Sequence record: OR142618.1
Reading direction: 5' to 3' (one strand)
Length of the DNA: 64,000 nucleotides
Position 1 is the stretch's first letter; each line of letters begins with the position of its first letter. A program made the position numbers and the translations under genes. Of the stretch, positions 17,153-48,660 are shown in pieces. Under the pieces are notes generated by a model that made no database searches, was not told the origin of the DNA, and saw only the letters and a program-made list of their open reading frames with translations.

Positions 17153-17560
17153 ATGCAACATACTCACATTCGTTTCTACAACGAAGAAACTCAACAGATC
17201 GATAACCGCCGTGGCGCTACTGTTGCCTGGGAAACCGCCGGCAACAAGATCCGTATTTCCGTAGCAGCATGTTCGGAAATGGATAACTTCAACCGCAAGA
17301 CCGGACGTGAACATGCTGCTAGCCGTCTCGAAAGTGGCGACTACATCGAGTTTAACGGCACCGAACTTCTTAATGCACAGATGTCTTCTGTAAGTCATGT
17401 GCAGTCTGAAGGTCTCGTTCGTGCTATGTGCTTCTTGCTAGCACAAGGCAAAGGCGATCTATATTACCCGGCAAGCGAAGGTCAGCTTCGCAGCGAAGCC
17501 GAGTGCAATAGCTACAACGCCCTCGAGTACCTGAAACACCAGATGGGCATTCATCAGTAA
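17153..17560 (+). CDS. hypothetical protein, host-like codon usage
   Basis: 135 aa, GC-richer; phage-type motif ACSEMDNFNRKTGREHAASRL. Confidence 0.8.
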   Translation: MQHTHIRFYNEETQQIDNRRGATVAWETAGNKIRISVAACSEMDNFNRKTGREHAASRLESGDYIEFNGTELLNAQMSSVSHVQSEGLVRAMCFLLAQGKGDLYYPASEGQLRSEAECNSYNALEYLKHQMGIHQ

Positions 17561-17573
17561 GTATTCGGCCATT

Positions 17574-17616
17574 CGGAATTGCGATTTAGGTTTTGGAATT
17601 CTAAATCGCAATTCCG
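17574..17616. repeat. perfect 16-bp inverted repeat, 11-nt loop
   Basis: cggaattgcgatttag / ctaaatcgcaattccg. Confidence 0.9.
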
Positions 17617-17801
17617 GTTTCCAAATTCAATTTTAGGCACAAACTCGGATCCGCATTTGCATTTTGCATTTACATTTTGTGTTCTGAGTGTATATGCAAA
17701 ATGCAATCGCGCATGTTGTCGATGCATTGGCTAATCTTTTATTTTTGATAGTTTAGAAAAGATTAAGAACAGAAACTATCTGTAAATTAATAAAAATAAC
17801 A

Positions 17802-17830
17802 TTTACATTACATACACATATGCATATACT
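17802..17830 (+). promoter_or_regulatory. sigma70-type promoter
   Basis: TTTACA-17-TATACT with A-rich upstream sequence. Confidence 0.7.
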
Positions 17831-17836
17831 ATATAT

Positions 17837-18115
17837 AAGTTATGCGCTGTTGCATACGTAAATACCTCCTATGTTGTTTAGATATGTCGATTCTGGTATA
17901 ACCAGATAGACCTAAGGATGATGCTAGTGATTCCTTAGTATTGTATATTCTAGCTGAGTATAAAGAGTAAGGGGCTTTATACAAATAACAATTCCTTAGG
18001 CAAGATATACCGCTCCGTTGTGCTGACGAGCATAATTTGCCCAGATACAGAGCACGTGACTGGTCTGAGGAGCATTTATATCAGAAAGGCAGACTTATGT
18101 TTGCCTTTCTTTTTG
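17837..18115 (+). ncRNA. putative small RNA (ncRNA-2)
   Basis: Lies between a promoter and an intrinsic terminator, has no credible ORF, forms several hairpins and carries ACCUCCU near the 5' end. Confidence 0.6.
18084..18115 (+). terminator. intrinsic terminator
   Basis: gaaaggcagac-ttat-gtttgcctttc followed by T-tract. Confidence 0.8.
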
Positions 18116-18129
18116 AGCAGATATTCTCT

Positions 18130-18300
18130 TATTCACTTCCTTATTCATTTCTTTATTCATCTCTATTTCGTTTGTCACTTCCTTATTCATTTCTTTATTC
18201 ATCTCTATTTCATTTGTTATTGCAAATAAGACTAATTCTTATTTGCGTTTGTAATTTCATTTGTTATTGCAAATAAGACTAATTCGTATTTGCATTTGCA
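18130..18300. repeat. pyrimidine-rich direct repeats
   Basis: cttccttattcatttctttattcatctct x2; catttgttattgcaaataagactaattc x2. Confidence 0.85.
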
Positions 18301-18513
18301 ACGAAAAAGAATATGCAAATAATAACTAATCTTATTTGCATTTGCACTGCCTAGTATATGGATTGGTAGCATACTTGGAAATGGATAGTAAATAAGTAGT
18401 TGATTTGTTTATAAATTATACTTCTACACCATACAGATTGACCTTGCTATATATAGCTCGTGCGCGTGTATACAAGATGGTAAAAAATAATTTAAAAATA
18501 TTTTAAAAAATGC

Positions 18514-18637
18514 TTGACTTTCCATTACTACGACCTTAAAGTGCGAACTGTAGACGCAGTGTGTAGAGCGCTACATAGTAAGCAACGCAGAAAGTAAACA
18601 AAAAATGCTTGACGCAATGCAAACTAGGCTCTACACT
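18514..18637 (+). promoter_or_regulatory. tandem sigma70-type promoters with A-tract UP elements
   Basis: TTGACT-17-TAAAGT (18514-18542) and TTGACG-17-TACACT (18609-18637), both preceded by aaaaatgc. Confidence 0.75.
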
Positions 18638-18720: not shown

Positions 18721-19425
18721 ATGTCCGTACATATCACTCGTCAACGTACCGACAAACAGCACGTCCTGGCACTGGCAATCAACGGCGTGGTCATCGGCCA
18801 GACCATGGCTACTTACACCACCCCGAGCAAGCGCACCTGGTCGGCGACCGCCGAAGTCGAACTGGCAGACGGCACTGTCGTTCAGTTCGAACAGAAGGAA
18901 GTGTTCAGCGCGATCCGCATCACCCGCGAAATCGAGCAGGCGCTCGACGGCAAGGAACTGGCGGCCAAGTACACCCCGGAACCGAAAGTTCCCGGGCAGA
19001 AGGGTCCGAAACCGCTCACCGACGAAAGCCGGCTCAGCAACGCGATCGCGATCGTCAAAGCGGCCATCACCCACACCGGCTTCGACGAAGCTACCCTGGT
19101 GTTCGACGGGGTCGACAAGGCCAACTTCGAGCAGAACAGCACCTCCGTCGGCAACAAGCTGCGTCGCCTGGGCTTCGTCTTCGAACTCGGCGCCGGCAAG
19201 GCGAACAGCGGCAAGGGCTTCCTGATCAACCGCAAAGCGCAGGCCGAGGCAGAAGCTGCCGAACGCAAGGCCAAGCGCGACGCCGAGAAGAAGGAACGCG
19301 AAGAAAAAGCGGCGGCTGCCAAGCGCGAAGCTGACGAACGCAAGGCCAAGCGTGAAGCCGAACGCGCCGAAAAGGTCGCTGAAAAGAACGCAGCGATCGC
19401 CGGGGCAGCGCAGGAAAGCAAGTAA
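18721..19425 (+). CDS. paralog A of a three-member GC-rich family; K/E/A-rich C-terminal tail
   Basis: Shared domain NGVVIGQ...TPSKRTWSA...EQKEVFSAIRITR; GAGG RBS; terminator follows. Confidence 0.9.
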   Translation: MSVHITRQRTDKQHVLALAINGVVIGQTMATYTTPSKRTWSATAEVELADGTVVQFEQKEVFSAIRITREIEQALDGKELAAKYTPEPKVPGQKGPKPLTDESRLSNAIAIVKAAITHTGFDEATLVFDGVDKANFEQNSTSVGNKLRRLGFVFELGAGKANSGKGFLINRKAQAEAEAAERKAKRDAEKKEREEKAAAAKREADERKAKREAERAEKVAEKNAAIAGAAQESK

Positions 19426-19731: not shown

Positions 19732-20391
19732 CTATATAACAGTCAATAATTTTACATATGACTACTATCTAGAGGTAAACACACCTGCGTTTTCTTTAAT
19801 GATAATTATTCCGACAGTTCCTATATTAGACAATATTTGCATTACTTTTATAAAAAAGTATTAATATGAATATATTCTTTATATCAAACAGTCTATCTAA
19901 TATACTATATCATAAAGCTTATGATATACATATGATAGATATTAAGATTAATAATTCTACTTCTATTTGGCTTACATATTCTTTCAATATTACTAAGGTA
20001 TCATTTAAATATATTATCTGATTCGTTTTCTTATTGTATGAGTTGCAATTGCAAATTACTCTTATTTGTAATTGCATATAAACAATCAGTTGCTATTAAA
20101 AGTATTTGCTGTTAATATATTATATAACAGTGCAATTGATATTTTAAAATACAGTGTGCAATACATCTTACATGTATTAAAATTTGTGTGTTACTTATTT
20201 TGCATTAATGATTAATATACCTCTCCTACAGTACAAAACTCATACTATAAACAATTTGTTCGGGCGATCGTTCTCGAAAAGTATACAAGTGAGAGATAGC
20301 AATCTAATTATACTTGTTAGTTTCTATATAGAAGGTTCTAAATATAGAAAATTTGTATATAACAAAGAATACCTCAAAGAGATTTCAGCAT

Positions 20392-24430: not shown

Positions 24431-24460
24431 AGAAAGGGAATTATAATTCCCTTTCTTTTT
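24431..24460 (+). terminator. intrinsic terminator
   Basis: agaaagggaat-tata-attccctttct followed by T-tract. Confidence 0.8.
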
Positions 24461-24579
24461 GGATCTATATTAGCAAATACTAATTAATCTTATTTGCACA
24501 AATTTAATCCTATTGTGTTTTCTATTTTGAAGTGCTACATTACATGTAGTTGCATAAAACTATATACAGGAGAAATGAT

Positions 24580-25220: not shown

Positions 25221-25514
25221 ATGAAAAAAGAATTTGAATCGCGGATTCGGACTCCCTCTCCGGCGCCAGCGCCCCGGACGCCCGATGTGTGCAGCGAGTG
25301 CAATGACACCGGGAAAGTCTATGACGAAAGCGGCGCCGGTCCGTGGAGTTGCTACGCCTGTACCGGTAACCCGGAGGTGATCGGCTACGCAAACGGCGAT
25401 GAGTTGGACAACATGCTGGATGACCGCACTGCTGTTCTCTCTCCAAGGAAGACCAGTTTTCACACCGTGCCAGTGTATCGACTGATCCACACCCAAAACA
25501 AAAGTTTTCAATAA
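25221..25514 (+). CDS. hypothetical protein with CxxC...CxxC Zn-ribbon, GC-rich
   Basis: CSECNDTG...CYACTG; GGAG RBS. Confidence 0.75.
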   Translation: MKKEFESRIRTPSPAPAPRTPDVCSECNDTGKVYDESGAGPWSCYACTGNPEVIGYANGDELDNMLDDRTAVLSPRKTSFHTVPVYRLIHTQNKSFQ

Positions 25515-25562
25515 AATCGATATGGAATTGGCCCTCCGGCAAGCCGGAATAGAGGTGAAGCC

Positions 25563-25772
25563 ATGAAGACATTTTTGAAGATGCTCGCATATTGCGTGCT
25601 TGGGACATCCATTGGCATTGCCATCAGCCAATGGTTCATCTTCGTCCTAGAGATGAGGCTTGGCGCCGTGCTCTGGTACATCGTTGGCCTTGGTCCTGTG
25701 CTGCTTGTGTTTTGCATTTTGGGCAGCTTCCTTCAATGGCTGATTCATAAGAACTTGGAGAAAAAGCAATGA
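25563..25772 (+). CDS. small membrane protein, GC-rich
   Basis: GAGGT RBS; two hydrophobic segments. Confidence 0.7.
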   Translation: MKTFLKMLAYCVLGTSIGIAISQWFIFVLEMRLGAVLWYIVGLGPVLLVFCILGSFLQWLIHKNLEKKQ

Positions 25773-25843
25773 CCGACCACGCAGAGCTGCGGAGGCTGGC
25801 TAAAGAAGTGATCCGAATTGAACGAAATGAGGATGCAGCATGA
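25769..25843 (+). pseudogene. 24-aa remnant resembling the N-terminus of Ead/Ea22-like prophage proteins
   Basis: MTDHAELRRLAKEVIRIERNEDAA*; ATGA-coupled on both sides. Confidence 0.45.
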
Positions 25844-26376
25844 GCATTGACTGGAGCAAGGCACCAGAGGGTGCGACGCACTACCAACCGGAATCACGTG
25901 GCTTCCATGCGGCATGGTTCCGACTTCAAGGGGGGAAGGCTCGCGAAATGTGGGTCGTGATACCCGGCGGTGCGCTTGAGCACATCATCGATCCGACTGT
26001 CTTCGACGAGAGCATGCAGAACCTGATCGCCCGCCCCGTAGAACCTGCCACCTGGAACGGCCAGGGCCTGCCGCCGGTTGGCCTGATGGTGGAGTGGAAG
26101 GCAGGCCTTGATCACGACTGGCAGCGCGTAACCGTGCTTGCCTACGCCAATGGCGACGCGTGGTTTCAGCCTGAGGATGGCCCGTCTTTCATCGTCGGCA
26201 ACCCGGCAAACTTCAGGCGTATCCGCACCCCCGAGCAGTTGGTCGCCGAGGAGCGGGAAAAGGCGATTAATCAGATGATTTCTGATGCTGGATACGTAGA
26301 TCCGAAGATTGGCACATTTGTGGCTATGCGCAATCTCTACGACGCCGGCTACCGGCGTCGGGAGGAAGGGAAATGA
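25840..26376 (+). CDS. Pseudomonas temperate-phage-type hypothetical protein
   Basis: MSIDWSKAPEGATHY ... WNGQGLPPVG ... RTPEQLVAEEREKAI ... LYDAGYR, a typical prophage-family pattern. Confidence 0.8.
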   Translation: MSIDWSKAPEGATHYQPESRGFHAAWFRLQGGKAREMWVVIPGGALEHIIDPTVFDESMQNLIARPVEPATWNGQGLPPVGLMVEWKAGLDHDWQRVTVLAYANGDAWFQPEDGPSFIVGNPANFRRIRTPEQLVAEEREKAINQMISDAGYVDPKIGTFVAMRNLYDAGYRRREEGK

Positions 26377-26639
26377 GCAGACTGACAGCTGAGCAAGCCC
26401 GTGACATAGCGCGAGCGAAAGACGATGTCGATACTATCCTCAACGACATCGCCAAAACAGCCGCAGAAGGAAAGTACGTGTACACTACCCGCGCCTATGG
26501 GTTCGGCACAGGCGGCGGACGGCGCAGCGACGCGATCCTCAAAGTGTTGCGTAGCCTCGGCTACGACTGTGCTGTGCATGCTGAGGGACGCCAGTCTGTT
26601 GACCTGTGGCTTGAAGTGAAATGGGGAGACAAGCCATGA
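26373..26639 (+). CDS. hypothetical protein, GC-rich
   Basis: 88 aa, ATGA-coupled, GGAAGG RBS. Confidence 0.75.
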   Translation: MSRLTAEQARDIARAKDDVDTILNDIAKTAAEGKYVYTTRAYGFGTGGGRRSDAILKVLRSLGYDCAVHAEGRQSVDLWLEVKWGDKP

Positions 26640-27082
26640 CTAACAACCCCGGAGATTCAAAAATGATCGTAGAAAACGCCAAGCAAGCCGCCGAAGACTT
26701 CAAAACTTCCATGGCTAAGATTTTTCCGAATTACATCGCCAGGGCGTCGGTTTCCGATAACCTTGGTCCGGCGATGACAATTTCGTTTGCGAATGTCGGT
26801 TGCGCTTCCGAAGCCCCTAACAGCATTCTGATGAATGCGAGCGGTTACATGCGCTTTATGATGCATTTGTGTGACAATTGCGGGAATGTATTGCCAGAAG
26901 GTTCGCCGGTAGAAATTGAGCTACTAATGTGGTCTATCCCCTATCGTTCGGAAGTGATCAAGTTCCGCAAGATCAAGGGCAAGACACCAGCCGAAGCTAT
27001 GCAAAAGCTAGTCAAGTGGTTTGAAAAAACGCTGAAGCTATCCGGGGTCTGTAATGGTCTCCACGTAGGACACGCAGAATGA
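26636..27082 (+). CDS. hypothetical protein
   Basis: ATGA-coupled start MTNNPGDSK; GGAG RBS. Confidence 0.7.
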   Translation: MTNNPGDSKMIVENAKQAAEDFKTSMAKIFPNYIARASVSDNLGPAMTISFANVGCASEAPNSILMNASGYMRFMMHLCDNCGNVLPEGSPVEIELLMWSIPYRSEVIKFRKIKGKTPAEAMQKLVKWFEKTLKLSGVCNGLHVGHAE

Positions 27083-27480
27083 ACATTGTGTTGGACAAAT
27101 TGCTGTTTGGCGGTTTCATCGACCAGCACCGCAATGAACTTGCCCAGCAACAACTGAATCGGTTGTTTGCCAAGTACGGTGAGCCGAAGATTGGTATCAC
27201 ACGGGCATGCTTTCTATCTAAGCATTACGTCCTGAAGTTCCCGATTAATGACAGGGGTGAGCGGTGCAACGATTGGGAAGGTAGCTGTTCCGGCAGCTAT
27301 TTGGCACGCGGACGCTGGCTAGAAATCGGAGGCTTCATTTGCGTCATGCAAGAGCGTTTGGTTGAAGTGGATTGGAAGAACAACACCCATGCAAACTTTC
27401 CTGATTGGGTAGGCAGCATAGATTGTGGTCAAGTCGGCTACGATAAACATGGCGTTCTGAAAGCGTATGACTTCGGGTGA
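27079..27480 (+). CDS. minimal protein-kinase-like fold protein (putative)
   Basis: GITRACF, VLKFP, NDWE, VMQERL, IDCGQVG and terminal YDFG in canonical kinase order. Confidence 0.55.
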   Translation: MNIVLDKLLFGGFIDQHRNELAQQQLNRLFAKYGEPKIGITRACFLSKHYVLKFPINDRGERCNDWEGSCSGSYLARGRWLEIGGFICVMQERLVEVDWKNNTHANFPDWVGSIDCGQVGYDKHGVLKAYDFG

Positions 27481-27729
27481 AGCATGACCCCGGTCGACCC
27501 TGACAGTGGCATTAATAGCATCAGTAAAACCACAAGAAATTCTCATAGCTGAAATGGAACAGTTAAGAACAAAGAACAGTGAATACAAAGAAAGAGGTTT
27601 TTAGCGGCTAAATTGTTGCGCTTTTCTTCGATATTTAGTATATTTCTATTGACGTGCTAGGGCATTTTGTACTAATATAGCACTTGAAGGCTAGGTATTC
27701 CGCCAAAGTCTACTACCGGAGAACTTCCG

Positions 27730-28017
27730 ATGATTGTTAAAGTCGCTGCTTTCCGTAACGCTGTTGACCACCTTTTCCGCGTGGTCAATGTCGACTATCA
27801 CGCTTGCGTGCGCGCAGACGAGCTGCGCAACTGGCAAAGCATTGCAAGTCGTGTTCTAGCCGAAGTCGATGCCTTAGAATGCAAGCGCGCTAGACAGGAC
27901 GACCTCGATCAGCAGCGCCGCAGCATCGAAACAGCCCGCGAACGCATGGACCAGGCAGCGCAACGCATCGCCCAACTCGAAACCGTTATCCGTCCCGCTG
28001 TAGGGCGCATGCAATGA
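27730..28017 (+). CDS. hypothetical protein with C-terminal coiled coil, GC-rich
   Basis: TTGACG promoter at 27649; GGAG RBS. Confidence 0.8.
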   Translation: MIVKVAAFRNAVDHLFRVVNVDYHACVRADELRNWQSIASRVLAEVDALECKRARQDDLDQQRRSIETARERMDQAAQRIAQLETVIRPAVGRMQ

Positions 28018-28168
28018 GCGCCCTTCGCTTCGCCGCAATCCGGAATTGTCAAAACCAGCATGCACCAGCGCCATCAAAACTGACGATGAACATCCGCAAT
28101 GCAGATATGGAAAGAGACAAGAAATGAAATTCTAAATTACTTAAACAAACACAATAGGAGCAGAATAC

Positions 28169-28399
28169 ATGAGCCTTAAATATAATGGATATGTCTTAAG
28201 CATCAATATCCTCGGTCAAAACGAAACTATCAGTGAATACGCCTATCCTACCGATGATCCTAAAAGTGATAAAAAGAAAGCTTTTTTGGCTGCAATGACA
28301 AAATTCGTTGAATCAGATGATTTTGAGAAATTTACTAACGAAATGTATACAAATTTCTCGATTAATGTTCAAGCCCTAGTTTCTACGTCTACGGAGTAA
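28169..28399 (+). CDS. hypothetical protein
   Basis: AGGAG RBS. Confidence 0.75.
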   Translation: MSLKYNGYVLSINILGQNETISEYAYPTDDPKSDKKKAFLAAMTKFVESDDFEKFTNEMYTNFSINVQALVSTSTE

Positions 28400-28403
28400 A
28401 TTA

Positions 28404-28580: not shown

Positions 28581-28821
28581 CATTTACAATATATCTATAA
28601 AAGAATATAGTAGTGACACAGTTGTTAAATTGCAAACACTAATTAATCTTATTTGCATTTGCTATCTTGTATAATAGAAACGACTTCTAAACATGGATAT
28701 GAGATGGAAAACTTAGATAGGATCTCTGTTACAAATTTTTGAGTTACAATACATAGTAGTTTTGCTATTATGTGTTTATAGAAGTTTAATAACAGAACTA
28801 AAACATAAAGGATTGTCTGTC

Positions 28822-30475: not shown

Positions 30476-30709
30476 TATAAAGGGGGAATTATCCCCCTTT
30501 ATTTTTCTTTTATAAACATAAATAATTCGCATTTGCACCGAAGATGCTTTATAACGCATAAATTTACATAGCTAATACATACATATTGCTAACGTTAAAA
30601 AGCGCGTTATATAGCTTATAATTGCATATTGTGCAATGCATTTGTTGGTGTTATATTAAACATGCGCAACAATCAACTATACAAAAACATTTATTATGGA
30701 GATACAACA

Positions 30710-31442: not shown

Positions 31443-31945
31443 ACAAAGCAATACAGCATAACGCATTGTAAGCAACACTAAACGGGAGACACCGTCCCGC
31501 AAGCAGCCCGCCCGCGATGTTCGCGGGCTGCGGCAAACAGGTGTACAAGGTCTAGTAACGTGGAAGGCGCAGCATACCTTTCCTTAAATCGGAAATCGGT
31601 CAATGACGTACCTGCCCCTGGACACTGCTAGACCTTGCTGCTACAGGCGGGACAGCTACAAAGGTACACTGTATGTATCTATGCTTTACCCCGCTTTGTA
31701 GCAGGTCTTAAAACGGTCTACTGGCATATGCCTTAGTGCTAGTAGGAATCATTAACCTAAAACTATTATATGCTTCCTGGAGGTGAAGAGTATGCCGCCG
31801 CAGCATTAAATATACATTATGATGATGATAATTATGAATGCCGAAACACCGCTTCGATTCGTTTAAAAGACAGATGTCTGAATCGAATGTTTTTGGGCAA
31901 AAAGGTCCCTTAGATGGGATTTTTTTGCGGCTGCTAACTAGCAAA
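31443..31945 (+). ncRNA. putative ~500-nt two-domain structured RNA (ncRNA-4)
   Basis: GC-rich and ORF-free; nested helices gtcccgc/gcgggac, caaggtctag/ctagaccttg, gcagcccgc/gcgggctgc, gctacaaag/ctttgtagc, tgctagt/actagca. Confidence 0.7.
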
Positions 31946-32042
31946 CGCGAATTAATCTTATTTGCAATTTAAGAAAAATACCAGTTGACTGTAGCTTGCT
32001 AACATAGTACATTTAACTCATAAATCCGCAGGAGTAGCAGTT

Positions 32043-32482: not shown

Positions 32483-32715
32483 GCGTATACTGTAATTGCA
32501 TAGCATGCGGTGGAGATGATCCGTATGCTGTATGTGAAAATGTGTTAATGGATATCCAAAAGCACAAATATAATACTGGTCCCAGCTGGGGGCTGGTAGT
32601 TGCGGCAGTATTGTGTTTGGTAGGAATGGGATTAGCAGGTAACGCAGCACTATCTGATAAAAAAGAAACACCGTGCGAAACTACACAACAAAAACAAGAG
32701 GTGTATAATGAGTAA
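32479..32715 (+). CDS. small Cys-motif membrane protein
   Basis: CNCIACGG plus one TM segment. Confidence 0.65.
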   Translation: MSVYCNCIACGGDDPYAVCENVLMDIQKHKYNTGPSWGLVVAAVLCLVGMGLAGNAALSDKKETPCETTQQKQEVYNE

Positions 32716-32914
32716 CAAAACAACAGACATGCTGGTAGATGAATTTCTGTGCGAGCGTGCATCTTTTTCTCCGTTTAGCGAAGGTGTTCATGCAGCTAAA
32801 CTAGGGCAGAAATATACAGACTGCCCGTATACCAAAAATGAGCCGTATGAACGTAACGAATGGATTCGAGGACATCAAATGTGGCATGATTATTCTGTTC
32901 AACAATACAAATAA
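32708..32914 (+). CDS. Rmf/CrpP-fold protein (ribosome modulation factor-like)
   Basis: EG-VH-A-AKL-G-QKYTD-CPY-x7-R-NE-W-IR-G matches the RMF pattern G-x2-A-x3-G-x5-CPY-xn-R-x2-W-x2-G. Confidence 0.65.
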   Translation: MSNKTTDMLVDEFLCERASFSPFSEGVHAAKLGQKYTDCPYTKNEPYERNEWIRGHQMWHDYSVQQYK

Positions 32915-33669: not shown

Positions 33670-33951
33670 TAGTTCTATATTTTTTGATATATGCAAACGC
33701 AAATAATTAGAATTTGCAGAACCTGTTACAAACTTTCTGTTTATATAAAATACAATCATGCTATAATAGTTTATAATAAAAATGTAAGCATATAGCACCA
33801 AAAGAACAAAGATGAAGTTCATTCTTTGTCTAAAGATTAAGTTTGCTGAGAATTTTGATAAGAAACTTCAACTGCTAGATATTATATCAATAGTGCATTT
33901 ATCATGCATTGAACAGAAAAGAAGTACTCTTTTATCTACGAGGAAAAGCAA

Positions 33952-34438: not shown

Positions 34439-34617
34439 TGCCGTCGCCGGGCGTGAACTACATTTATTAGGAAAGGGGTTTTAAGCCCCTTTCCTTTTGA
34501 ATGTTAAGTGTAAGTGCAAATTAATCTTATTTACTTGTTACAATTTAGTTCTTGAATTCACACATAATAGTATGTATAGTTTTAATATATAAGATACCAA
34601 CATGTGAGATTGTAAAA

Positions 34618-36039: not shown

Positions 36040-36081
36040 AAAGGAAGGGGTTTAACCCCTTCCTTTCTATGCAGGTGTTAA

Positions 36082-36818: not shown

Positions 36819-36829
36819 TTTAGTTTCTT

Positions 36830-36906
36830 TTTCATTATCAATATCTTTTTCTTTTTCAATATCTTTTTCTTTATCTTTTTCTTTATCTTTTTCTTTATCT
36901 TTTATC
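36830..36906. repeat. atctttttcttt tandem tract
   Basis: About 4 copies of (t)atctttttcttt. Confidence 0.8.
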
Positions 36907-37029
36907 ATTGCAAATACAAATAATAATTATTCTTATTTGCATTTAGTGATGTAAATAATTCTTATTTGTATTTGCGATTAATTCTTATTTGCTACAATAG
37001 ATAGAATAAGAATAATTCACATTTGCAAT

Positions 37030-37374: not shown

Positions 37375-37845
37375 ATGTCTAATGTAAGCATCCCTGCTGT
37401 AACTGTAGAGAACATCGGCACCCTGCGCATCGTGCGCACCGCTAACAAGGAGGTCGGAAGTGTGCTCGACCTAAAAGTTAACGGGGTAGTAGTAGGGCAA
37501 GCTTTCCCGCTCTACAGCACAAAAACCCAGCGTAGCTGGAACGCGAGCATGCACGCTACCGTTAACGGCGTAGAGGTGCAGTTTGCACAGGAAGGCGTGT
37601 TCAGTGCAATCCGCATTGCACGGGCGTTCGAGGATGCAGTAAAGCACGCCGTTAGCAACGGCGAACAAGGGCAACCCCTCCCCGCGCCGGCGGCGGCAGA
37701 AGCGCAAGCAGAAGCGCAAGCAGAAGCCCCGGCAGCGCAGACCGAGGATGCGCCGGAGACCCCGGCAGCCGAAGCTAAGCCCGCCCGCAAAGGCGGCAGC
37801 AAAGGCGGCAGCAAAGGCGGCAGCAAAGGCGGCAGCAAAAAGTAA
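37375..37845 (+). CDS. paralog B of three-member family; A/E/P linker and (KGGS)4 tail
   Basis: NGVVVGQ...STKTQRSWNA...AQEGVFSAIRIARA; TAGACA-17-TAAGCT promoter at 37314; GGAG RBS. Confidence 0.9.
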   Translation: MSNVSIPAVTVENIGTLRIVRTANKEVGSVLDLKVNGVVVGQAFPLYSTKTQRSWNASMHATVNGVEVQFAQEGVFSAIRIARAFEDAVKHAVSNGEQGQPLPAPAAAEAQAEAQAEAPAAQTEDAPETPAAEAKPARKGGSKGGSKGGSKGGSKK

Positions 37846-37999
37846 GCGCTGCTAACACAGGAAAGGGGCAACTGCCCCTTTCCTTTTATGTCCTAGTTGT
37901 AAACGCAAATTAATCTTATTTGCATTTGCACAAGTCATTCTCCGGTTGCATTACTGCGGTAAGATGTTAGTATATATGTAGCTATACGGAGTAATTGCT

Positions 38000-38230
38000 A
38001 TGAAGCGCAAGTACCTAAAGGCACAGTTCGAGCATGTCAGTGCCGGGCGAGTTGCAAAAGAACTCGACGAGAAGTTCAATTTCGTTGTAGGCGATAATGT
38101 ACACTACTGGGCCATCTTCGAAACTAATGTCAAACCCGAAGTTCTACAAAAGGCAATTCATGACATGAACGGTGGTGCTTACTGCCATGCATATTCTATT
38201 CCGTATGAGGATGTAGAGGAGTATCTCTAA
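38000..38230 (+). CDS. hypothetical protein
   Basis: GGAG RBS, immediately after joint promoter. Confidence 0.8.
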   Translation: MKRKYLKAQFEHVSAGRVAKELDEKFNFVVGDNVHYWAIFETNVKPEVLQKAIHDMNGGAYCHAYSIPYEDVEEYL

Positions 38231-38444
38231 TGCTCTACTATCGCGATGTTTATGCAGGTGTTTGCTGTTAAACTTGTATAGCCGGCACCAGGTCGCATAT
38301 AACACGCCTAGCCCCATGCAAACTGCGGACATGATCCATTCACGCCTGTAGCGTATGTTCGAAGAATTCGGTTGCAAGCCCGACGGTTGCTCTGCTAGCA
38401 TGTACGAGGATAAGACGCACATTACACTAGCCTGGAGCAAGTAA

Positions 38445-38735
38445 ATGGATATGTCGATTGTGAACAAGCGCTTCGAGAAAGAACTAGCGCTGTTTAATGT
38501 CGAAGTTCTCAGTAAGCGCACAGTGAATCATATAACGAAACCGAACATCGAAGTTTCGTTCAAACTAAAGGGTCATACTACTGAAGAAGAGATGACCACT
38601 GTTACTCAGCTCGCACGTCCCATTATGGAGTATGTAAGCGGACGTAGGGTGGTCTGGGCACATACCGGTCTTTGGCGCTCAATGAAAGACGACCTCGAAG
38701 TAGCAGTGCTGACAATGAAGTTATCCAAACAATAA
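38445..38735 (+). CDS. hypothetical protein
   Basis: GGAG RBS; followed by joint terminator. Confidence 0.75.
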   Translation: MDMSIVNKRFEKELALFNVEVLSKRTVNHITKPNIEVSFKLKGHTTEEEMTTVTQLARPIMEYVSGRRVVWAHTGLWRSMKDDLEVAVLTMKLSKQ

Positions 38736-38890
38736 GAGAAAGGGGCACTTGCCCCTTTCCTTTTATGTCCTAGTTGTAAATGCAAATTACTCTTATTTGC
38801 ATTTGCACAAGTCAATCTCCTGTTGCATTACTGCGGTAAGATGTTAGTATGTGTTTAGCAGTAACACATAACTAGCAGGAGCAACAGACA

Positions 38891-39151
38891 ATGGCAAAGG
38901 TTTACCAAGCAAGTGACAGCACCGGTGAGTGGCAGTGTGTTGTTATCCTCCCCGACGTTGACTCGGCTCTTCTGTACGCTACCAAGCGCTGCGCGCAAAT
39001 GGGCAAGGTGGAAGTTGTCGGTCCGTGGGCTCCTGTAATGCCACAGCATTACGCGAACATGCCGAAAGGTGACGGTGCGGAAGTGCAGTGGCGCCTCATC
39101 CCGCCGGGTTGCGGTGTAGCCTGGTACGTCACTTCGGTTAACGACAAGTAA
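38891..39151 (+). CDS. hypothetical protein, GC-rich
   Basis: GCAGGAG RBS after joint promoter. Confidence 0.8.
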   Translation: MAKVYQASDSTGEWQCVVILPDVDSALLYATKRCAQMGKVEVVGPWAPVMPQHYANMPKGDGAEVQWRLIPPGCGVAWYVTSVNDK

Positions 39152-39161
39152 GGAGACAGAC

Positions 39162-39464
39162 ATGAACCTCGTTACTCTGTGGATCAACGGGCGTGCTGTG
39201 ACTGCCCGCAAGGTTGTCAGTAAACACACTGTCCGCAATCCGAACAGTCCGATCGATATCGAGACTATCGACGTTGTTCGACTGCGTCTGCCCCGTGGTG
39301 TTCGTGCTAGCAGTTGGGCACTCCGTAAGGCAGTGTACCAACTCATGGAGCAAAGCTGTAGCTGCTCGAGAGACTGTTGTGGACACTGGTTCGGCGGCGC
39401 ACGCAAGATCTACATTAAAGGCAGAGACGTCAGTGTAGTTGCCGGGTACCAGCGCAATTACTAA
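39162..39464 (+). CDS. hypothetical protein with CSCSRDCCGHW motif, GC-rich
   Basis: AAGGAG RBS; Cys cluster. Confidence 0.8.
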   Translation: MNLVTLWINGRAVTARKVVSKHTVRNPNSPIDIETIDVVRLRLPRGVRASSWALRKAVYQLMEQSCSCSRDCCGHWFGGARKIYIKGRDVSVVAGYQRNY

Positions 39465-39719
39465 AGGAAAGGGGGCAACTGCCCCTTTCCTTTTATGTCC
39501 TAGTTGTAAATGCAAATTATTCTTATTTGCAATGATAATATCCCCGCCACGCAAATAAGAACTAATCTTAGAACAAATATTCACTTGATTTTTCTCCCAA
39601 TATAGTGTATGTGTATACCGGATAAGATTAAGTCTTGTTTGCTTGTTACATTTTATATGTTGCAATGCTAAGGCAATGATACTATTATATGTACAGTAAT
39701 ATAACCCAGGGGATATAAC

Positions 39720-40025: not shown

Positions 40026-40244
40026 TAAAGGAAAGGGGGAATTAATCCCCTTTCCTTTTATATATAATATACTTATAAATAAGAATTAATTTTATTTAAT
40101 TAAAATTAGAATAATTCTTATTTGCACGATCCCGCACTTATAACACAAGTATATTACAAAAGCAAGAATAAAATTAACTTGACACACATATGTAGAATAT
40201 AGCACAATGTGTTTATAAATTATATTACTACAGGAGTGTTAACC

Positions 40245-40915: not shown

Positions 40916-41065
40916 TATTTGGATTTGATAATTGGAAATATAATAGTAATTCTTATTTGCAATTATAATAAATTCTTGTTTACTTTTAAAATAAAAGCAA
41001 ATTCTAGTTGCATAGCTAGAGGCACTGTGCTAGTATATTAAAAAATAAAGACAGGAGTGTTATTC

Positions 41066-41248: not shown

Positions 41249-41265
41249 TGCAGAAATTATAGTCA

Positions 41266-41294
41266 TAAGAAAAGGGGCATTGCCCCTTTTCTTA
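41266..41294. terminator. bidirectional intrinsic terminator
   Basis: taagaaaaggggc-att-gccccttttctta between convergent genes. Confidence 0.85.
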
Positions 41295-41531
41295 TAGTCC
41301 CAACAAATGCTTGCCACTTTTGACTTGCATCATACGTACTTTCTTTTTGCGCATTTGCGTTCTTACGTTCAGGCTGTTGGGACCTTTGAAGCTATACAGT
41401 ATTTCAGTAGTCCCGTCTTCATAGTTGCGTACCACATTTGCAACAATTTGACTGCCTTCCTGGAACGCTTCGATAAACACGCAGTAATTGAAATTTTCCT
41501 TGTTAGCGTTATGTGCGCGTAGTTGCATCAT
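41292..41531 (-). CDS. hypothetical protein (only minus-strand cassette in the early region)
   Basis: Minus-strand GCAGGAG RBS and TTGCAT...TATACT promoter; ends at the bidirectional terminator. Confidence 0.7.
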   Translation of the reverse strand: MMQLRAHNANKENFNYCVFIEAFQEGSQIVANVVRNYEDGTTEILYSFKGPNSLNVRTQMRKKKVRMMQVKSGKHLLGL

Positions 41532-41884
41532 TTTCTGTTACTCCTGCGTTGTTTTGCTTTGTTATGTGTAGTATACGCTATGTGTGTACTAATGCAAGAA
41601 TTTTCTTCCATTTTCTTTCAAATAAAATGTTATTAGCATCTATTCTGTTATAACATTTTCTATGACTTCGTGTTTTGCAAATAAGAATTATTCGCATTTG
41701 CATTCCTACCTATCTGCCTAAATTTTAGGCAGCCTGGGTGATTGTCTCCCCCGCCCTATTACTGGTCTCTGTATAAAGATAATAGCATATTTGCATCTGC
41801 ATGCAAGCATTTTTTGTAGAATTTTCCTCTTGACATTCCTTGCTGTAGGCTACATTATGCACACACAAAGCAGGAGATACCATT

Positions 41885-43220: not shown

Positions 43221-43552
43221 ATTTATATTAAAATCCCTTTTATTAACTTCAGTTGTCAGTGTTGGCATACTACTGATATTCATTATTATTTCATTATTAA
43301 TGTTGGGCTTAGGACCGATAGTTCCATTCCTTATTTAATTTTAATTATTTGCAAGCAAATGCAAATGCGAATAATTCTTATTATCCAGCAGGCTACTGTA
43401 CCTAATCTTCGTTAGATAAAATCTATTAGAATCTACAAAGTCCATTAAAACGTTCAATTGTACATGGTGGCCAGATCTGCATATACTACACACATGAAGC
43501 AAGCAAACAGCGCTTCATAAACAAACCCAAATACAGCTAGGAGTTCCAAATC

Positions 43553-43990
43553 ATGACCAAAGCAACCGTTACCGTCGAGCAATCCGCAATCAAACTGGTC
43601 CGCCGCAACCTGGAAGGGCACCGGCAGGCCCTGCTGCTGAACGGCGTCGAAGTAGGCAGCAGCGAAGCGTTCTACAAGACCAAAACCCAGCGCACCTGGT
43701 CGGCGAAGATCGACGCCAACATCAACGGCAAGGACATCGTCCTCGAACAGAAAGGCGTGTTCAGTGCGATCCGGATCGCCCGGGCGATGGAACAAGCAAT
43801 CCTGTTCATCCTGACCGACGGCAAAGAAGGCGCCGAGATGCCGGCCAGCACGCTGAGCAAGGAAGAGCAAGCCCACAACCTGGTCAAGGCAGTAGTTCAG
43901 GTTGCCGGCCACGCAGTCCAGTCCGGCGACGCTGCCCCGGCGAAGAAAGGCAGCTCGAAGAAGCGCAAAGAAGCCCAGCCGGAAGCATAA
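43553..43990 (+). CDS. paralog C of three-member family; basic tail
   Basis: NGVEVGS...KTKTQRTWSA...EQKGVFSAIRIARA; AGGAG RBS; terminator at 44004-44029. Confidence 0.9.
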   Translation: MTKATVTVEQSAIKLVRRNLEGHRQALLLNGVEVGSSEAFYKTKTQRTWSAKIDANINGKDIVLEQKGVFSAIRIARAMEQAILFILTDGKEGAEMPASTLSKEEQAHNLVKAVVQVAGHAVQSGDAAPAKKGSSKKRKEAQPEA

Positions 43991-44146
43991 TCCGGACTAC
44001 ACCGAGAAAGCACCGAAAGGTGCTTTCTCTATGACTGTTAATAACAAATATTCTTATTTGCATCTATTCTGATATAATAATAACTCTTATTTACAAATCA
44101 TACTGAATACTGTATTTTACACATTAAACATTGTAGGTAATATAAA

Positions 44147-44941: not shown

Positions 44942-45160
44942 TTAGTGACACAGGAAAGGGGGCAGTTGCCCCCTTTCCCATTATTAAGTCAAATGCAAAT
45001 GCAAATACAAATTATTCTTATTTGCACAGATCAGACCATCCATTCCAATAACATTACTAACTTGGATGAAATGGCTTACTACAATGAACTTTGAATACTA
45101 AAAAGTACCTAAGAAGTAATTCCAGTTGTATCTAAAACACTATGTGTTATTATACATATA

Positions 45161-45752: not shown

Positions 45753-45839
45753 TAAGCATATTAATTTTCATATTTTGGTAGACAAGGGTACTCACTGGAT
45801 GCATACTGTACACATACAGAACATACGGAGTACAAAGGG

Positions 45840-46109
45840 ATGGATGCGCGTAGCCTGCTTCGCCTGATAGAAGACCTCCCTATAGCTGTCTTCGGCAGCA
45901 CAATGGATATTGTTCATCGAGTCAATTTTGAAGCTCTGGACAATGCCGCCCACACCGACGGGGTAAAAGTCCACGAAGACGGAACCAACCGTTATACGGA
46001 CGCTTTTGTTGATTGTTGGCTCCGCAGCGTCGAAACAATTTTGGCCTGTTGCGATTTTGTGACCGAGGATGCCGCTAAGTGGTATATCGAGCACGGTGTC
46101 AAGTTTTGA
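45840..46109 (+). CDS. hypothetical protein, GC-rich
   Basis: GGAG/AAGGG RBS. Confidence 0.7.
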   Translation: MDARSLLRLIEDLPIAVFGSTMDIVHRVNFEALDNAAHTDGVKVHEDGTNRYTDAFVDCWLRSVETILACCDFVTEDAAKWYIEHGVKF

Positions 46110-46207
46110 CATCCTCCGCCTCGCCTGCAGATAAAAAGGTTGACGTAGACTAGCAATGGACACATAATAATTACAACGCAACGCAACTAGCCCTGGAGGG
46201 CAAAACT

Positions 46208-46357
46208 ATGTGTAACATTCAATGCATGAACAGCAAAGCCGGCGAGTCCTACGCATGGGTTTGGAGCGATAGCGATAGCGATATCTGCTACGAAGTTATC
46301 TTCCGGCATGGCCAAGTCCTCACCCAGGTTTGGCTCGGATATGATATTGTAGCCTAA
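46208..46357 (+). CDS. 49-aa acidic micro-protein
   Basis: TTGACG-17-CATAAT promoter at 46140; GGAGG RBS; terminator at 46366-46390. Confidence 0.7.
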   Translation: MCNIQCMNSKAGESYAWVWSDSDSDICYEVIFRHGQVLTQVWLGYDIVA

Positions 46358-46406
46358 CACCAACTAAAGCCCCGTCCCAGGCGGGGCTTTACCGAAGGAA
46401 AAGATC

Positions 46407-46616
46407 ATGATCGAACAACTGAAAGACATGCTCGTAGCGCAACGCATGCGCATGAACCAACTCGAAAAACTGCGCTACACCGGACGCGTCGCTAGCGAGT
46501 TGCATGCCCACGCCAGGGAATTGTGTGAAGCATTGGAACTGGCAATTGCAAATGCCCAGTGCCTGGAAATGCGCAAGTGCGAAGAGGGCACCCTGCACGC
46601 CCTCTTCGCACAATAA
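46407..46616 (+). CDS. hypothetical protein, GC-rich
   Basis: AAGGA RBS; helical. Confidence 0.7.
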   Translation: MIEQLKDMLVAQRMRMNQLEKLRYTGRVASELHAHARELCEALELAIANAQCLEMRKCEEGTLHALFAQ

Positions 46617-46649
46617 CCCACCGCGCACAACCCGACAAGGAAACTAACC

Positions 46650-47141
46650 ATGAGCACTACCATCCCCGATTCGATTCATCCGAGTGATCTTCCTGAAATC
46701 GGGCTGCCATTAGCCGACGGAACCTTCTTTGCCCGCCAATGGCTCAATGGCAAGGAATACGCCTACGTCGATCTCGGCAAAAGCGCCGAGTTCACTGGAG
46801 AATGGGGCAAGTATGGCCATGACGTGGTCGGCGCCGGCAGCTACCGAGACGGAGCTTCGAACACGGTCGCTATGGCAGAAGCTGGCAGTCCGATTGCCAA
46901 GCAAGCCATGGAGATCGGAGAAGGCGTATTTATTCCCTCTGTTCTGGAACTGGCTCTTCTGTTCTCCGCCAAGCAAGCAGGCGAGTTGTCTGGTTTCGCA
47001 GATCGCTGGTATTGGTCGAGTTCGCAGGACTCCGCTAACGCCGCCTTCAACATGGACTTCGGCGACGGCTACACAAGCGGACACGTCAAGTACGTCGACT
47101 TCCGTGTCCGCCCCGTCCGCAAGATTCTCATCCTTCAGTAA
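46650..47141 (+). CDS. DUF1566 / Lcl C-terminal (C-type lectin fold) protein
   Basis: IPSVLELALL ... WYWSSSQDSANAAFNMDFGDG ... FRVRPVR. Confidence 0.75.
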   Translation: MSTTIPDSIHPSDLPEIGLPLADGTFFARQWLNGKEYAYVDLGKSAEFTGEWGKYGHDVVGAGSYRDGASNTVAMAEAGSPIAKQAMEIGEGVFIPSVLELALLFSAKQAGELSGFADRWYWSSSQDSANAAFNMDFGDGYTSGHVKYVDFRVRPVRKILILQ

Positions 47142-47279
47142 TATAGCCCCGGCGAGCAAACATTGCTCGGAAGGTGCTAGCTGAACGACTGACGGAACAA
47201 TAAATAACGGTTGACGTGCGTCTAGCGGCGGATGCATAATAGCTACAAGACAACACAGCAAGCCCCGGAGGGCGCAACC

Positions 47280-47480
47280 ATGTCCCAGATCGTAGATGTC
47301 AAGCAAATTGCAATTGATGCAAACCGTCGCCCGGCCTACAATGCGGTCATGGTGCGCTGGTTGATGCAGGAAGCTGAACTTCACCGTAGCTGCGGTCGCA
47401 CCGCTACCCTGTTCTGCATCGTTCGCAACCGCCCCGACGGCACCCAGCGCCAGCTTGTGCAGCTTGTGGCTAGCGAGTAA
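47280..47480 (+). CDS. hypothetical protein, GC-rich
   Basis: TTGACG-18-CATAAT promoter at 47211; GGAGG RBS. Confidence 0.75.
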   Translation: MSQIVDVKQIAIDANRRPAYNAVMVRWLMQEAELHRSCGRTATLFCIVRNRPDGTQRQLVQLVASE

Positions 47481-47510
47481 CCTCTACAACCCTACGCCCA
47501 GGAGGCCGTC

Positions 47511-47675
47511 ATGAATGCTGTACTGGCTAAACTTCAAAACGAACGCTGTGCAACCCTTCGCTTGATGTTGCTCCCAGAGAACCGCGGGTATCGGTTCACT
47601 GACCACCCCTGGGCAAAGCAAATCCGCAATCTGCACGACGAAGCCAAGTGCATCCGCGAACATTACAGTAAGTAA
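47511..47675 (+). CDS. 54-aa hypothetical protein, GC-rich
   Basis: AGGAGG RBS; MNAVLAKLQNERC... Confidence 0.7.
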   Translation: MNAVLAKLQNERCATLRLMLLPENRGYRFTDHPWAKQIRNLHDEAKCIREHYSK

Positions 47676-47846
47676 TCCAATCCCACTGGATCTTACTGAG
47701 GATAAGATAATGACCTACGCAGAACTAATAAAGAAATTTCATAACATAGAAGCCGGTCATTATCTTTCCGACATTGAAGTAATCTTTCAGGAACATTGAG
47801 TACAACATTAATGAATTGCTGGGCTTCATCATTTATTGACTAGCCT

Positions 47847-48161
47847 ATGCACAGGAGAACTAAAATGAATTGCGAACATTTTTTCCTCAGTGCAGTAAAA
47901 GAACTTCTGTCCCTGTACCACATTAAGAGTACTATTCAACCGTCTTCTGATAACCTCGAAGAATTGGTAGTAGTTATTACCGATACTGCTTTCGGTACTA
48001 TCAGATATGTCGGTAATAACACCGGATCAGTTATGTGTTATACTATGGGCAGTAATTACCCGTTGTATGACACTGAATGTTATTCCGACCGAACTATGAT
48101 AGATTGTGTTATGTTGATATCAGTTTGGTATTCAATGTTCCCGACATTCGATAATAAGTAA
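47847..48161 (+). CDS. hypothetical protein
   Basis: AGGAG RBS before the internal MNCEHF. Confidence 0.7.
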   Translation: MHRRTKMNCEHFFLSAVKELLSLYHIKSTIQPSSDNLEELVVVITDTAFGTIRYVGNNTGSVMCYTMGSNYPLYDTECYSDRTMIDCVMLISVWYSMFPTFDNK

Positions 48162-48419
48162 TATAATGGTTGCCCTATATAGTGTATGATGTTAGTTGTA
48201 TACTATATAGAACATTTCTATTAACTGGGAGGGATTAATAAAAATATTTTCTTGACAATAGCAGGTATAGGATAATTCTATTATACTGAAAATTGTTATA
48301 GAAAAATATAGTTGACAAATTTTGAAAGTGATGAATTCCAACACCGGGTGGCTGTAAGCTGAGACGGTTGACATTCGGTGAGTGGTGGATTGTTACGCGG
48401 GTAGATTTTGAAATTCACC

Positions 48420-48660
48420 GTCTATAGGTTCACTTATGTCACTTATGAGTCATTTCCGTATATAGGTTCACTTATAACACATATAAGTTACTTCCATTCG
48501 CTCATAAGTAACGTTCGATTATAAGTATCTTTTGCTTATATGTTCACTCATAGGTTATGATAAATCACATTCAATACTGTTACTACACACATTCAAACCT
48601 ATAAGTCATTTCACTGTATTGTACTGTACTGTACTGTATCATATATACTTCATACAATTT
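48420..48660. repeat. low-complexity tract (TCACTT/TCACTC-rich)
   Basis: tataggttcacttat x2, gtcacttatgag, gttcactcatagg, (ctgta)n. Confidence 0.75.

Follow-up and report, generated by a model that had tools for sequence, protein, structure and literature searches.

Recurrent intergenic joints and early-gene turnover in the jumbo phage Callisto

Near-identical intergenic repeats, here called joints, separate small unrelated genes in the early region of Callisto (OR142618), a 287-kb jumbo myovirus of the PA5oct group (genus Wroclawvirus, family Arenbergviridae), and some of the insertions and deletions (indels) by which this phage and its sisters differ begin and end in them. The window analyzed here is a 64-kb stretch of that genome, numbered so that window position equals OR142618 record position minus 186,000. 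We observe the repeats, a common joint anatomy, joint-bounded indels, a chimeric joint where genes are missing, and alleles shared between joints at different sites. The joints are probably punctuation modules of the early region of a PA5oct-type jumbo phage, with homologous recombination between copies shuffling the genes in a manner like that of the promoter-early stem-loops (PeSLs) of T4-type phages.

The Callisto region from ~9.7 to ~48.4 kb of the window is orthologous to DNA in the 39,080-bp direct terminal repeat of PA5oct. The PA5oct genes gp34 to gp105, which lie in that repeat, are strongly transcribed at 5 min, i.e. early, and early transcription comes almost exclusively from one strand (PMC7318152). 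Rifampicin blocks PA5oct production, and the same study found no phage RNA polymerase (PMC7318152); the rifampicin sensitivity implies the host RNA polymerase as the reader of the early block. The joints sit in this block of ~100 small early genes, transcribed by the host polymerase.

Structure of the joints

A preliminary description of this DNA had reported two near-identical joints, and this is borne out: J1 (37861-37973) and J2 (38738-38850) differ at 6 of 113 nt (107/113 identical), the mismatches lying at 37871, 37872, 37904, 37913, 37938 and 37944 in J1 coordinates, and a repeat finder aligns them at 93% identity over 122 nt. Identity begins within the terminator stem and ends at 37973/38850, the last base of the predicted -10 element TAGTAT, beyond which each gene has its own leader and ribosome-binding site. 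The third copy that had been claimed is likewise present, as J3 (39466-39531) matches J1 and J2 over ~66 nt with a 1-nt indel, and the claimed related joints correspond to copies at 34470-34535 and 44953-45026. Additional joints were found at 24433-24498, 30477-30537 and 40030-40126, bringing the count to at least eight terminator-plus-box joints, along with ~25-30 boxes, between 18.2 and 45.0 kb.

The order of parts within a joint is an intrinsic terminator hairpin, a 27-bp AT-rich palindromic box and a promoter that extends to the last -10 base. Hairpins are of the type GGAAAGGGGC-loop-GCCCCTTTCC followed by TTTT and come immediately behind the upstream gene's stop codon, the distance to the stem being 1-13 nt for the stop codons at 37843-37845, 38733-38735 and 39462-39464. 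In J1 and J2 the stems are 9-11 bp long and a T-run follows, as in a predicted intrinsic (Rho-independent) terminator, and the joint segments of ~90 nt around them have folding energies of ~-28 to -34 kcal/mol (z-scores relative to shuffles, -4.7 to -7). The hairpin pattern GGAAAGGGG-N6-CCCCTTTCC has 8 matches vs 0.01 expected. After the box, J1 and J2 have a predicted -35 element TTGCAT, a 16-nt spacer and TG-n-TAGTAT, a TG-extended -10. We infer from these features that the hairpins terminate and the promoters fire, and the repeated unit thereby reads as a complete transcription stop-and-restart module. The joints and the genes between J1 and J3 are as follows.

37859-37973, + strand: J1, with hairpin at 37859-37888
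37898-37930, + strand: J1 box, a 27-bp box plus an extra overlapping TTTGCA
37946-37951 and 37968-37973, + strand: predicted J1 promoter, -35 TTGCAT and TG-extended -10 TAGTAT, respectively
38000-38735, + strand: cassette D, genes at 38000-38230 (76 aa) and 38445-38735 (96 aa) with a 214-nt gap
38737-38850, + strand: J2, with hairpin at 38737-38764; parts and register as in J1
38891-39464, + strand: genes of 86 aa and 100 aa between J2 and J3, both ORFans (GC 0.57 and 0.54)
39466-39531, + strand: J3, with hairpin at 39466-39494 and box only
40030-40126, + strand: joint with terminator at 40030-40059, degenerate box at 40074-40100 and box at 40100-40126; site of event G (below)
44953-45026, + strand: joint with terminator at 44953-44980 and box at 45000-45026; near event H (below)
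34470-34580, + strand: joint with terminator at 34470-34498, weaker box at 34509-34535 and predicted promoter end at 34580
24433-24541, + strand: joint with terminator at 24433-24460, box at 24472-24498 and predicted TG-extended -10 ending at 24541
30477-30537, + strand: joint with terminator at 30477-30506 and a weak box
41264-41296 (+ strand) and 36043-36066: terminator hairpins of the same family without an adjoining box

The genes between joints had been described as unrelated, and the four between J1 and J3 indeed share no similarity with one another; an exception is the gene upstream of J1 (37375-37845), which has paralogs in the window at 43553-43990 and 18721-19422. Pfam and PHROG searches assigned no function to the four J1-J3 genes or their neighbors. 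The cassettes have a GC content of 0.41-0.60 vs 0.27-0.41 for most backbone genes (window 0.34), and genes in 37375-39464 range from 0.45 to 0.60. The J1-J3 genes are compositionally foreign.

Gene turnover and allele exchange at joints

The preliminary description had proposed a gene-shuffling platform, to be doubted if relatives proved fully syntenic here or if breakpoints avoided the joints. We aligned positions 26-51 kb of the window to nine relatives at ~96-97% identity (PA5oct, MIJ3, Paride, Cassandra, Ettore, Deifobo, PAC2, 30-2 and 30-3) and read every junction, which yielded 12 events of at least 50 bp in 28.1-48.4 kb. The relatives are non-syntenic here and several breakpoints lie within joints, so the attempted refutation failed. 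Both ends fall in joints for three of the 12 events (D, F and G), and a further one, H, has one end near a joint.

Event D is the absence of 755-764 bp, comprising both genes of 38000-38735, from 4 of the 9 relatives (PA5oct, Paride, MIJ3 and 30-3). The flanking alignments overlap by 113-122 bp at the D junctions, which places the end-points in register within J1 and J2. Genomes lacking D keep one chimeric joint whose left flank is J1-like and whose right flank is J2-like. The side of the crossover varies, column 95 having the J1 state in PA5oct and the J2 state in Paride, MIJ3 and 30-3, and the chimeric joint of 30-3 is J2-like from the hairpin loop onward; because the crossover side differs between genomes, the D-minus genomes appear to have arisen by at least two separate exchanges. 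The absence of D is real, as 37913 is joined to 38791 in contigs from a PA5oct-type RNA run, and two RNA runs have no depth on 38024-38759, where a sludge metagenome has essentially none. In Deifobo and 30-2, D is internally deleted (38045-38342).

Event F concerns a ~700-bp cassette that is present in 9/9 relatives and absent from Callisto; it contains its own predicted promoter, a 321-nt gene and a terminator, with TTCTTATTTGCA on both flanks. The junction falls inside TTCTTATTTGCA with a 13-16 bp overlap, and Callisto has a single hybrid box at 39505-39531, where the right end of the J3 box (39516-39531) is the deletion junction. The simplest reading of this arrangement would be a Callisto-specific deletion between two boxes. 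In event G, the 72 nt at positions 40042-40113 give way, in Paride, PAC2, Cassandra and MIJ3, to a cassette of 458 bp that contains a gene of 288 nt; a direct repeat of ~42 nt, composed of the terminator tail and the box, stands on either side of the cassette. Event H, found in Cassandra, Deifobo and MIJ3, is an additional 367 bp that include a 297-nt gene; it starts 11 nt beyond the box at 45000-45026, at a point where the ten genomes diverge into several alleles. A backward joint from 40061 to 36909 was considered as a circle junction and rejected, since it is PA5oct's own 44.95-kb joint, whose hairpin resembles the Callisto hairpin at 40032.

Sequence is also shared between joints at different sites. 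There are no fixed differences between J1 and J2 across the genomes, and the distance between J1 and J2 within a genome (3.3 differences) is similar to that between orthologous J1 copies (3.4) or orthologous J2 copies (3.07). Derived states recur in both copies of a single genome, as with the GT loop of PAC2. The J3 spacer is of the J1/J2 type in Callisto, MIJ3 and 30-2 only, and seven other genomes have a different allele, which marks the "third copy" of Callisto as a local conversion. The 44.95-kb hairpin has at least four alleles, equal to the hairpins found at 40.03 kb, at 41.27 kb and in J1 in other genomes. By class, identity is lowest in terminators (93.8%) and highest in boxes (98.1%), with other intergenic DNA at 97.2% and coding DNA at 97.0%. 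The presence patterns of D and G occur in all four combinations, failing the four-gamete test, and the trees of three flanking segments are star-like and discordant; together these indicate that these phages recombine freely. Joint alleles thus appear to be copied between sites by ectopic conversion, and we infer that the recombination is homology-driven and ongoing.

Apart from these exchanges, the hairpin loop, and sometimes the whole hairpin, is reverse-complemented between sister genomes with the stem kept at 9/9 terminator sites compared (30477-30506, 34470-34498, 36043-36066, 37859-37888, 38737-38764, 39466-39494, 40030-40059, 41264-41296 and 44953-44980), in pairs such as CAACTG/CAGTTG, AATTAAT/ATTAATT, TTTTAAG/CTTAAAA and CATTG/CAATG. 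This is a very high rate for genomes ~3% apart. Small inversions of hairpin loops have classically been described in non-coding spacers of chloroplasts, where loops are likewise reverse-complemented with stems intact; the present case differs in occurring in a phage, at every terminator site compared and at such low divergence. The 34.47-kb hairpin is largely deleted in 30-3.

The proposed mechanism can be outlined from these features. A strong intrinsic terminator would end the transcript of the upstream gene, and a host-type (sigma-70) promoter with a TG-extended -10 would start that of the next. With the module reused many times within ~27 kb, its copies would constitute dispersed direct repeats, between which general homologous recombination could delete, duplicate or replace the intervening genes and also copy joint alleles from site to site. 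Every recombination product would be left with a functional terminator and promoter.

Joints cover 5.6% of the tested region and 13.7% of its intergenic DNA. Finding at least three of 12 events with both ends in joints has P = 0.0014 under uniform placement and P = 0.033 if both ends must be intergenic, and finding at least four of 12 with any end in a joint has P = 0.018 under uniform placement. Other results weigh against the shuffling of genes by joints. The last comparison is not significant (P = 0.19) under an intergenic-only null, and for eight of the 12 events (A, B, C, E, I, I2, J and K) neither end falls in a joint; these joint-free events lie at 28.4, 31.2, 33.8, 38.0-38.3, 45.9-47.6, 47.15 and 48.4 kb. 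The proteins of D, F, G and H, searched by tblastn, occur at one site each and in this genus only. Contigs from the PA5oct-type RNA runs break at repeats and gave no transcript ends. As for the box, its conservation across relatives is barely above that of other intergenic DNA (98.1% vs 97.2%), and no DNA-binding Pfam domain (helix-turn-helix or other) was found among 95 early open reading frames (ORFs) in 10.1-50.1 kb searched with Pfam and PHROGs. With one site per cassette, the comparison demonstrates loss and replacement, and gain, movement or capture would be conjecture; of the proposed platform, recombination at joints with loss and replacement of genes therefore stands, and cassette gain or movement is at most a hypothesis.

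One such joint-free position is of separate interest. Eight relatives have a ~200-bp intergenic module, consisting of a long hairpin and an AT-rich stretch, at 28398-28403, where the genes of Callisto and Ettore abut (TAAATTAATG); the variable unit there is the whole intergenic spacer and not a gene.

The joints might coincide with breakpoints without causing them, if selection shared by terminators and promoters kept the copies alike and intergenic DNA simply tolerated breakpoints. The eight joint-avoiding indels and the non-significant any-end value are what such a coincidence of function would predict, but the 107/113 identity covers spacers without obvious constraint, the deletion junction is in register and chimeric, paralogous copies in the same genome share derived states (the GT loop of PAC2), and joint alleles recur at different sites, so that we regard this explanation as unlikely. 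Less credible again is a site-specific exchange in which a dedicated recombinase or nuclease acts on the box, in the manner of an integron or of a homing endonuclease, and cassettes are cut and joined there. F and G do diverge exactly after TTCTTATTTGCA(C), with H diverging 11 nt after the same motif, and a 27-bp palindrome is like many recombination sites; divergence at a repeat edge, however, is equally expected from plain homologous recombination, and the D junctions lie at differing places of the 113-nt repeat in different genomes. Neither a recombinase nor a nuclease domain was found among the 95 early ORFs, and the cassettes have their own promoters, which integron cassettes do not.

It is very improbable that short-read assemblers created false presence and absence by collapsing or mis-joining the 113-nt repeats. 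De Bruijn contigs of 4/4 public runs break at boxes and hairpins and two GenBank records start or end beside joints, but the comparison draws on ten independent assemblies, including a Nanopore and Illumina hybrid (PA5oct), the cassette-bearing genomes agree in sequence, and two RNA runs have zero depth, and one metagenome essentially zero, on 38024-38759. For homologous recombination between joints, the statistical case for joint-bounded indels is moderate, and the sequence-level signatures outweigh the breakpoint statistics as evidence.

Searches of wider collections added no further loci. In IMG/VR, nothing matched when relatives were sought by the J1 spacer, and the 48 matches to a 17-nt box word, never more than one per locus, are compatible with chance for so short an AT-rich word; the joint word gave 0 matches in JGI metagenomes.

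The 27-bp box and neighboring features

The box is an imperfect AT-rich palindrome of 27 bp with consensus TGCAAATAAGAAT-T-ATTCTTATTTGCA, located ~10-15 nt beyond the hairpin. At up to 9 mismatches it has 31 matches vs 4.65 in local shuffles, and its 13-nt half ATTCTTATTTGCA has 40 matches at up to 2 mismatches vs 6.95 expected. When the 64-kb window was scanned, 20/20 half-boxes with at most 1 mismatch fell in 18.2-45.0 kb, within the early block. The two halves of the palindrome are unequally preserved, the one on the side of the downstream gene being much the better kept, and good half-sites are distributed with 16 on the + strand and 4 on the - strand. At seven joints, simple promoter scoring places the end of the box 15-22 nt before the best -35 and 37-43 nt before the -10, which puts the box at about -50 to -80; at four other sites, judged by eye, the box ends 10-12 nt before TATAAY and overlaps the -35 region. 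Boxes also occur away from joints, as follows.

36909-37027, + strand: cluster of 4-5 boxes in a 556-nt non-coding stretch upstream of the gene at 37375-37845
18221-18340, no strand assigned: cluster of three well-formed 27-bp palindromes upstream of the paralog at 18721-19422, with 10-11 of 13 arm positions self-complementary
41676-41702, no strand assigned: stand-alone box with 2 mismatches to the palindrome consensus
20044-20070, 28631-28657, 31940-31966 and 33692-33718: further stand-alone boxes
40935-40961, 43360-43386 and 44036-44062: further stand-alone boxes

The palindromic operator that had been proposed as part of the joint is thus confirmed as a palindrome, and the word operator was a guess: the box lies mostly upstream of the -35, it is biased in direction, and a protein that binds it was not found among the early ORFs. 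We lean towards the box as a candidate binding site for a dimeric regulator of early transcription, of phage or host origin, with repression and activation about equally plausible. A role as an UP-like upstream promoter element is possible though considerably less probable, and some role other than these two is less probable than either. A bolder proposal, which we hold only tentatively and consider rather unlikely, would have the box serve as operator for a specialised regulator, as yet unrecognised, that turns the entire early block on or off, for which the gp38/gp86 paralog family is a candidate, with the module doubling as a recombination handle. If true, a foreign gene placed between two modules would be instantly insulated, timed and exchangeable, and the terminal repeat would hold a self-wiring cassette platform.

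The candidate family comprises the paralogs at 18721-19422, 37375-37845 and 43553-43990, each of which lies just downstream of one of the densest box clusters (18221-18340, 36909-37027 and 43360-43386, respectively). Its members have a conserved N-terminal domain of ~95 aa and variable, basic, low-complexity tails (KGGSK repeats, KR-rich), and the PA5oct ortholog of 18721-19422, gp38, is a virion protein by mass spectrometry. A model of the family (pLDDT 78) has five strands and a helix. As a lead to a box-binding protein, the family gave no significant match in fold searches (best PDB E-value 0.13); AFDB matches were to uncharacterised proteins (E ~0.05, TM 0.5-0.6), and no significant Pfam match was found in the 10 remote homologs scanned. 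Two further likenesses, both seen by eye, were too weak to claim: that of the box core to a Fur box, and that of "TTTGCA + 12 nt + TATAAY" (4 sites) to the MotA-type middle promoters of T4. A literature search on a TGCAAAT/ATTTGCA palindrome returned nothing relevant.

Repeats of other kinds adjoin the boxes and this gene family. A CTTTTT-rich 18-nt tandem array at 36824-36905 and a GGCAGCAAAGGC (KGGS) repeat at 37787-37814, in the tail of the 156-aa protein at 37375-37845, both vary in length among relatives, in in-frame-sized steps of 12, 18 or 24 nt. The ~1-kb non-coding stretch at 17560-18520 is the counterpart of the abundant ncRNA001 of PA5oct; it has a perfect inverted repeat at ~17576-17617 and two ~45-nt direct repeats at ~18125-18220, and the three best palindromic boxes follow directly. 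An Rfam scan of the whole window gave no match. Near the position where the PA5oct terminal repeat ends, two 38-nt tandem repeats at 48418-48493 vary among relatives in copy number and sequence, PAC2 having 38 nt deleted and MIJ3 one copy more.

Among the small genes of the region, the Cys-rich 100-aa protein encoded between J2 and J3 (39162-39464) has phrog_20892, whose function is unannotated, as its sole family match, and distant relatives at 36-47% identity on marine metagenome contigs. A 68-aa early ORF at 32708-32911 weakly matches ribosome modulation factor (PF04957) at 24.7 bits, below the 27.9 cut-off, which is curious as the group has drawn notice for its replication on dormant cells. 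Of two GC-rich islands, the one at 25239-28156 (0.41-0.52) holds different genes in relatives, with breakpoints at gene starts and ends and without a joint or box. The other, at 45800-48200 (~0.50-0.56), holds genes that are 84-90% identical in DNA to those of the temperate Pseudomonas phages D3, PMG1, FBPa42 and phPA-G; it has a different repeated promoter and leader (…AAGGTTGACG…CATAATAA; …GGAGGGCAA…ATG), and gene replacements I and J in relatives end near these repeats of its own.

Relation to known systems and implications

Each PeSL of a T4-type phage is a ~100-bp element that combines an early promoter with a stem-loop terminator and has an AT-rich part on the upstream side; PeSLs occur upstream of ORFans in plastic regions, sister-phage indels are bounded by them, and both mini-circles and reporter activity have been demonstrated (Arbiol et al. 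2010, PMC2839356; Comeau et al. 2014, PMC4122927). The Callisto joints share with them the length of ~100 bp, the intergenic position, a predicted sigma-70-type early promoter with a G/C-rich stem-loop terminator, and an AT-rich stretch upstream of the -35, here the 27-bp box. They share also the placement in plastic regions upstream of early ORFans (PA5oct orthologs gp34-gp105 are early) and the repeat-bounded indels and replacements that leave one chimeric element, here D, F, G and partly H, with 8/12 events not bounded by joints. They differ in their fixed order of terminator, palindrome and promoter, whereas the stem-loop of a PeSL usually lies within or beside the promoter; in having as AT-rich part a defined 27-bp palindrome with a strongly conserved promoter-proximal half; and in belonging to Arenbergviridae and a long terminal repeat, and not to T4-like myoviruses. 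Judged by their sequence, the joints appear to agree with PeSLs in every architectural and comparative feature, and they would work like a PeSL system while being a separate instance outside the T4 set. Papers on MIJ3, PA5oct and Paride do not mention the joint repeats.

Two other systems offer partial likenesses. As with the stoperators of Cluster A mycobacteriophages, tens of copies of a short site are spread across the intergenic DNA of a gene block and are biased in orientation with the direction of transcription (here 16 vs 4). Stoperators, however, are asymmetric sites of 13-14 bp bound by a known monomeric immunity repressor in temperate phages (PMC9283540), whereas Callisto is a virulent jumbo phage with an imperfect palindrome of 27 bp as its site, and its 95 early ORFs yielded no binding protein. 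With integron arrays the locus has in common a row of small unrelated genes, a recurring structured repeat between them and variation in the presence of single cassettes. It differs in having no integrase, attC-type site or common promoter, in the separate promoter of each cassette, and in an exchange that looks homology-driven. The search for a tyrosine-recombinase integrase found no recombinase domain among the 95 ORFs of 10.1-50.1 kb, and an integron cassette array was rejected as the identity of the locus, there being neither recombinase domain nor attC and each cassette having its own promoter.

Shuffling of this kind was already known in T4-like phages; what is new here is PeSL-like shuffling in a further phage family. 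The shuffling of genes by regulatory repeats is thereby extended from T4-like phages to an unrelated family of jumbo phages, which suggests that one reused terminator-promoter module may be a general, integrase-free route for the turnover of early accessory genes in large virulent phages. The box is a new DNA motif of the early region that can be tested for a regulator, and the joints account for the breaks and differences that assemblies of these phages show here. The PA5oct group includes Paride, which can kill dormant P. aeruginosa, and PA5oct itself counts among the candidates for phage therapy; for this group, the joints mark early genes that are dispensable and variable.

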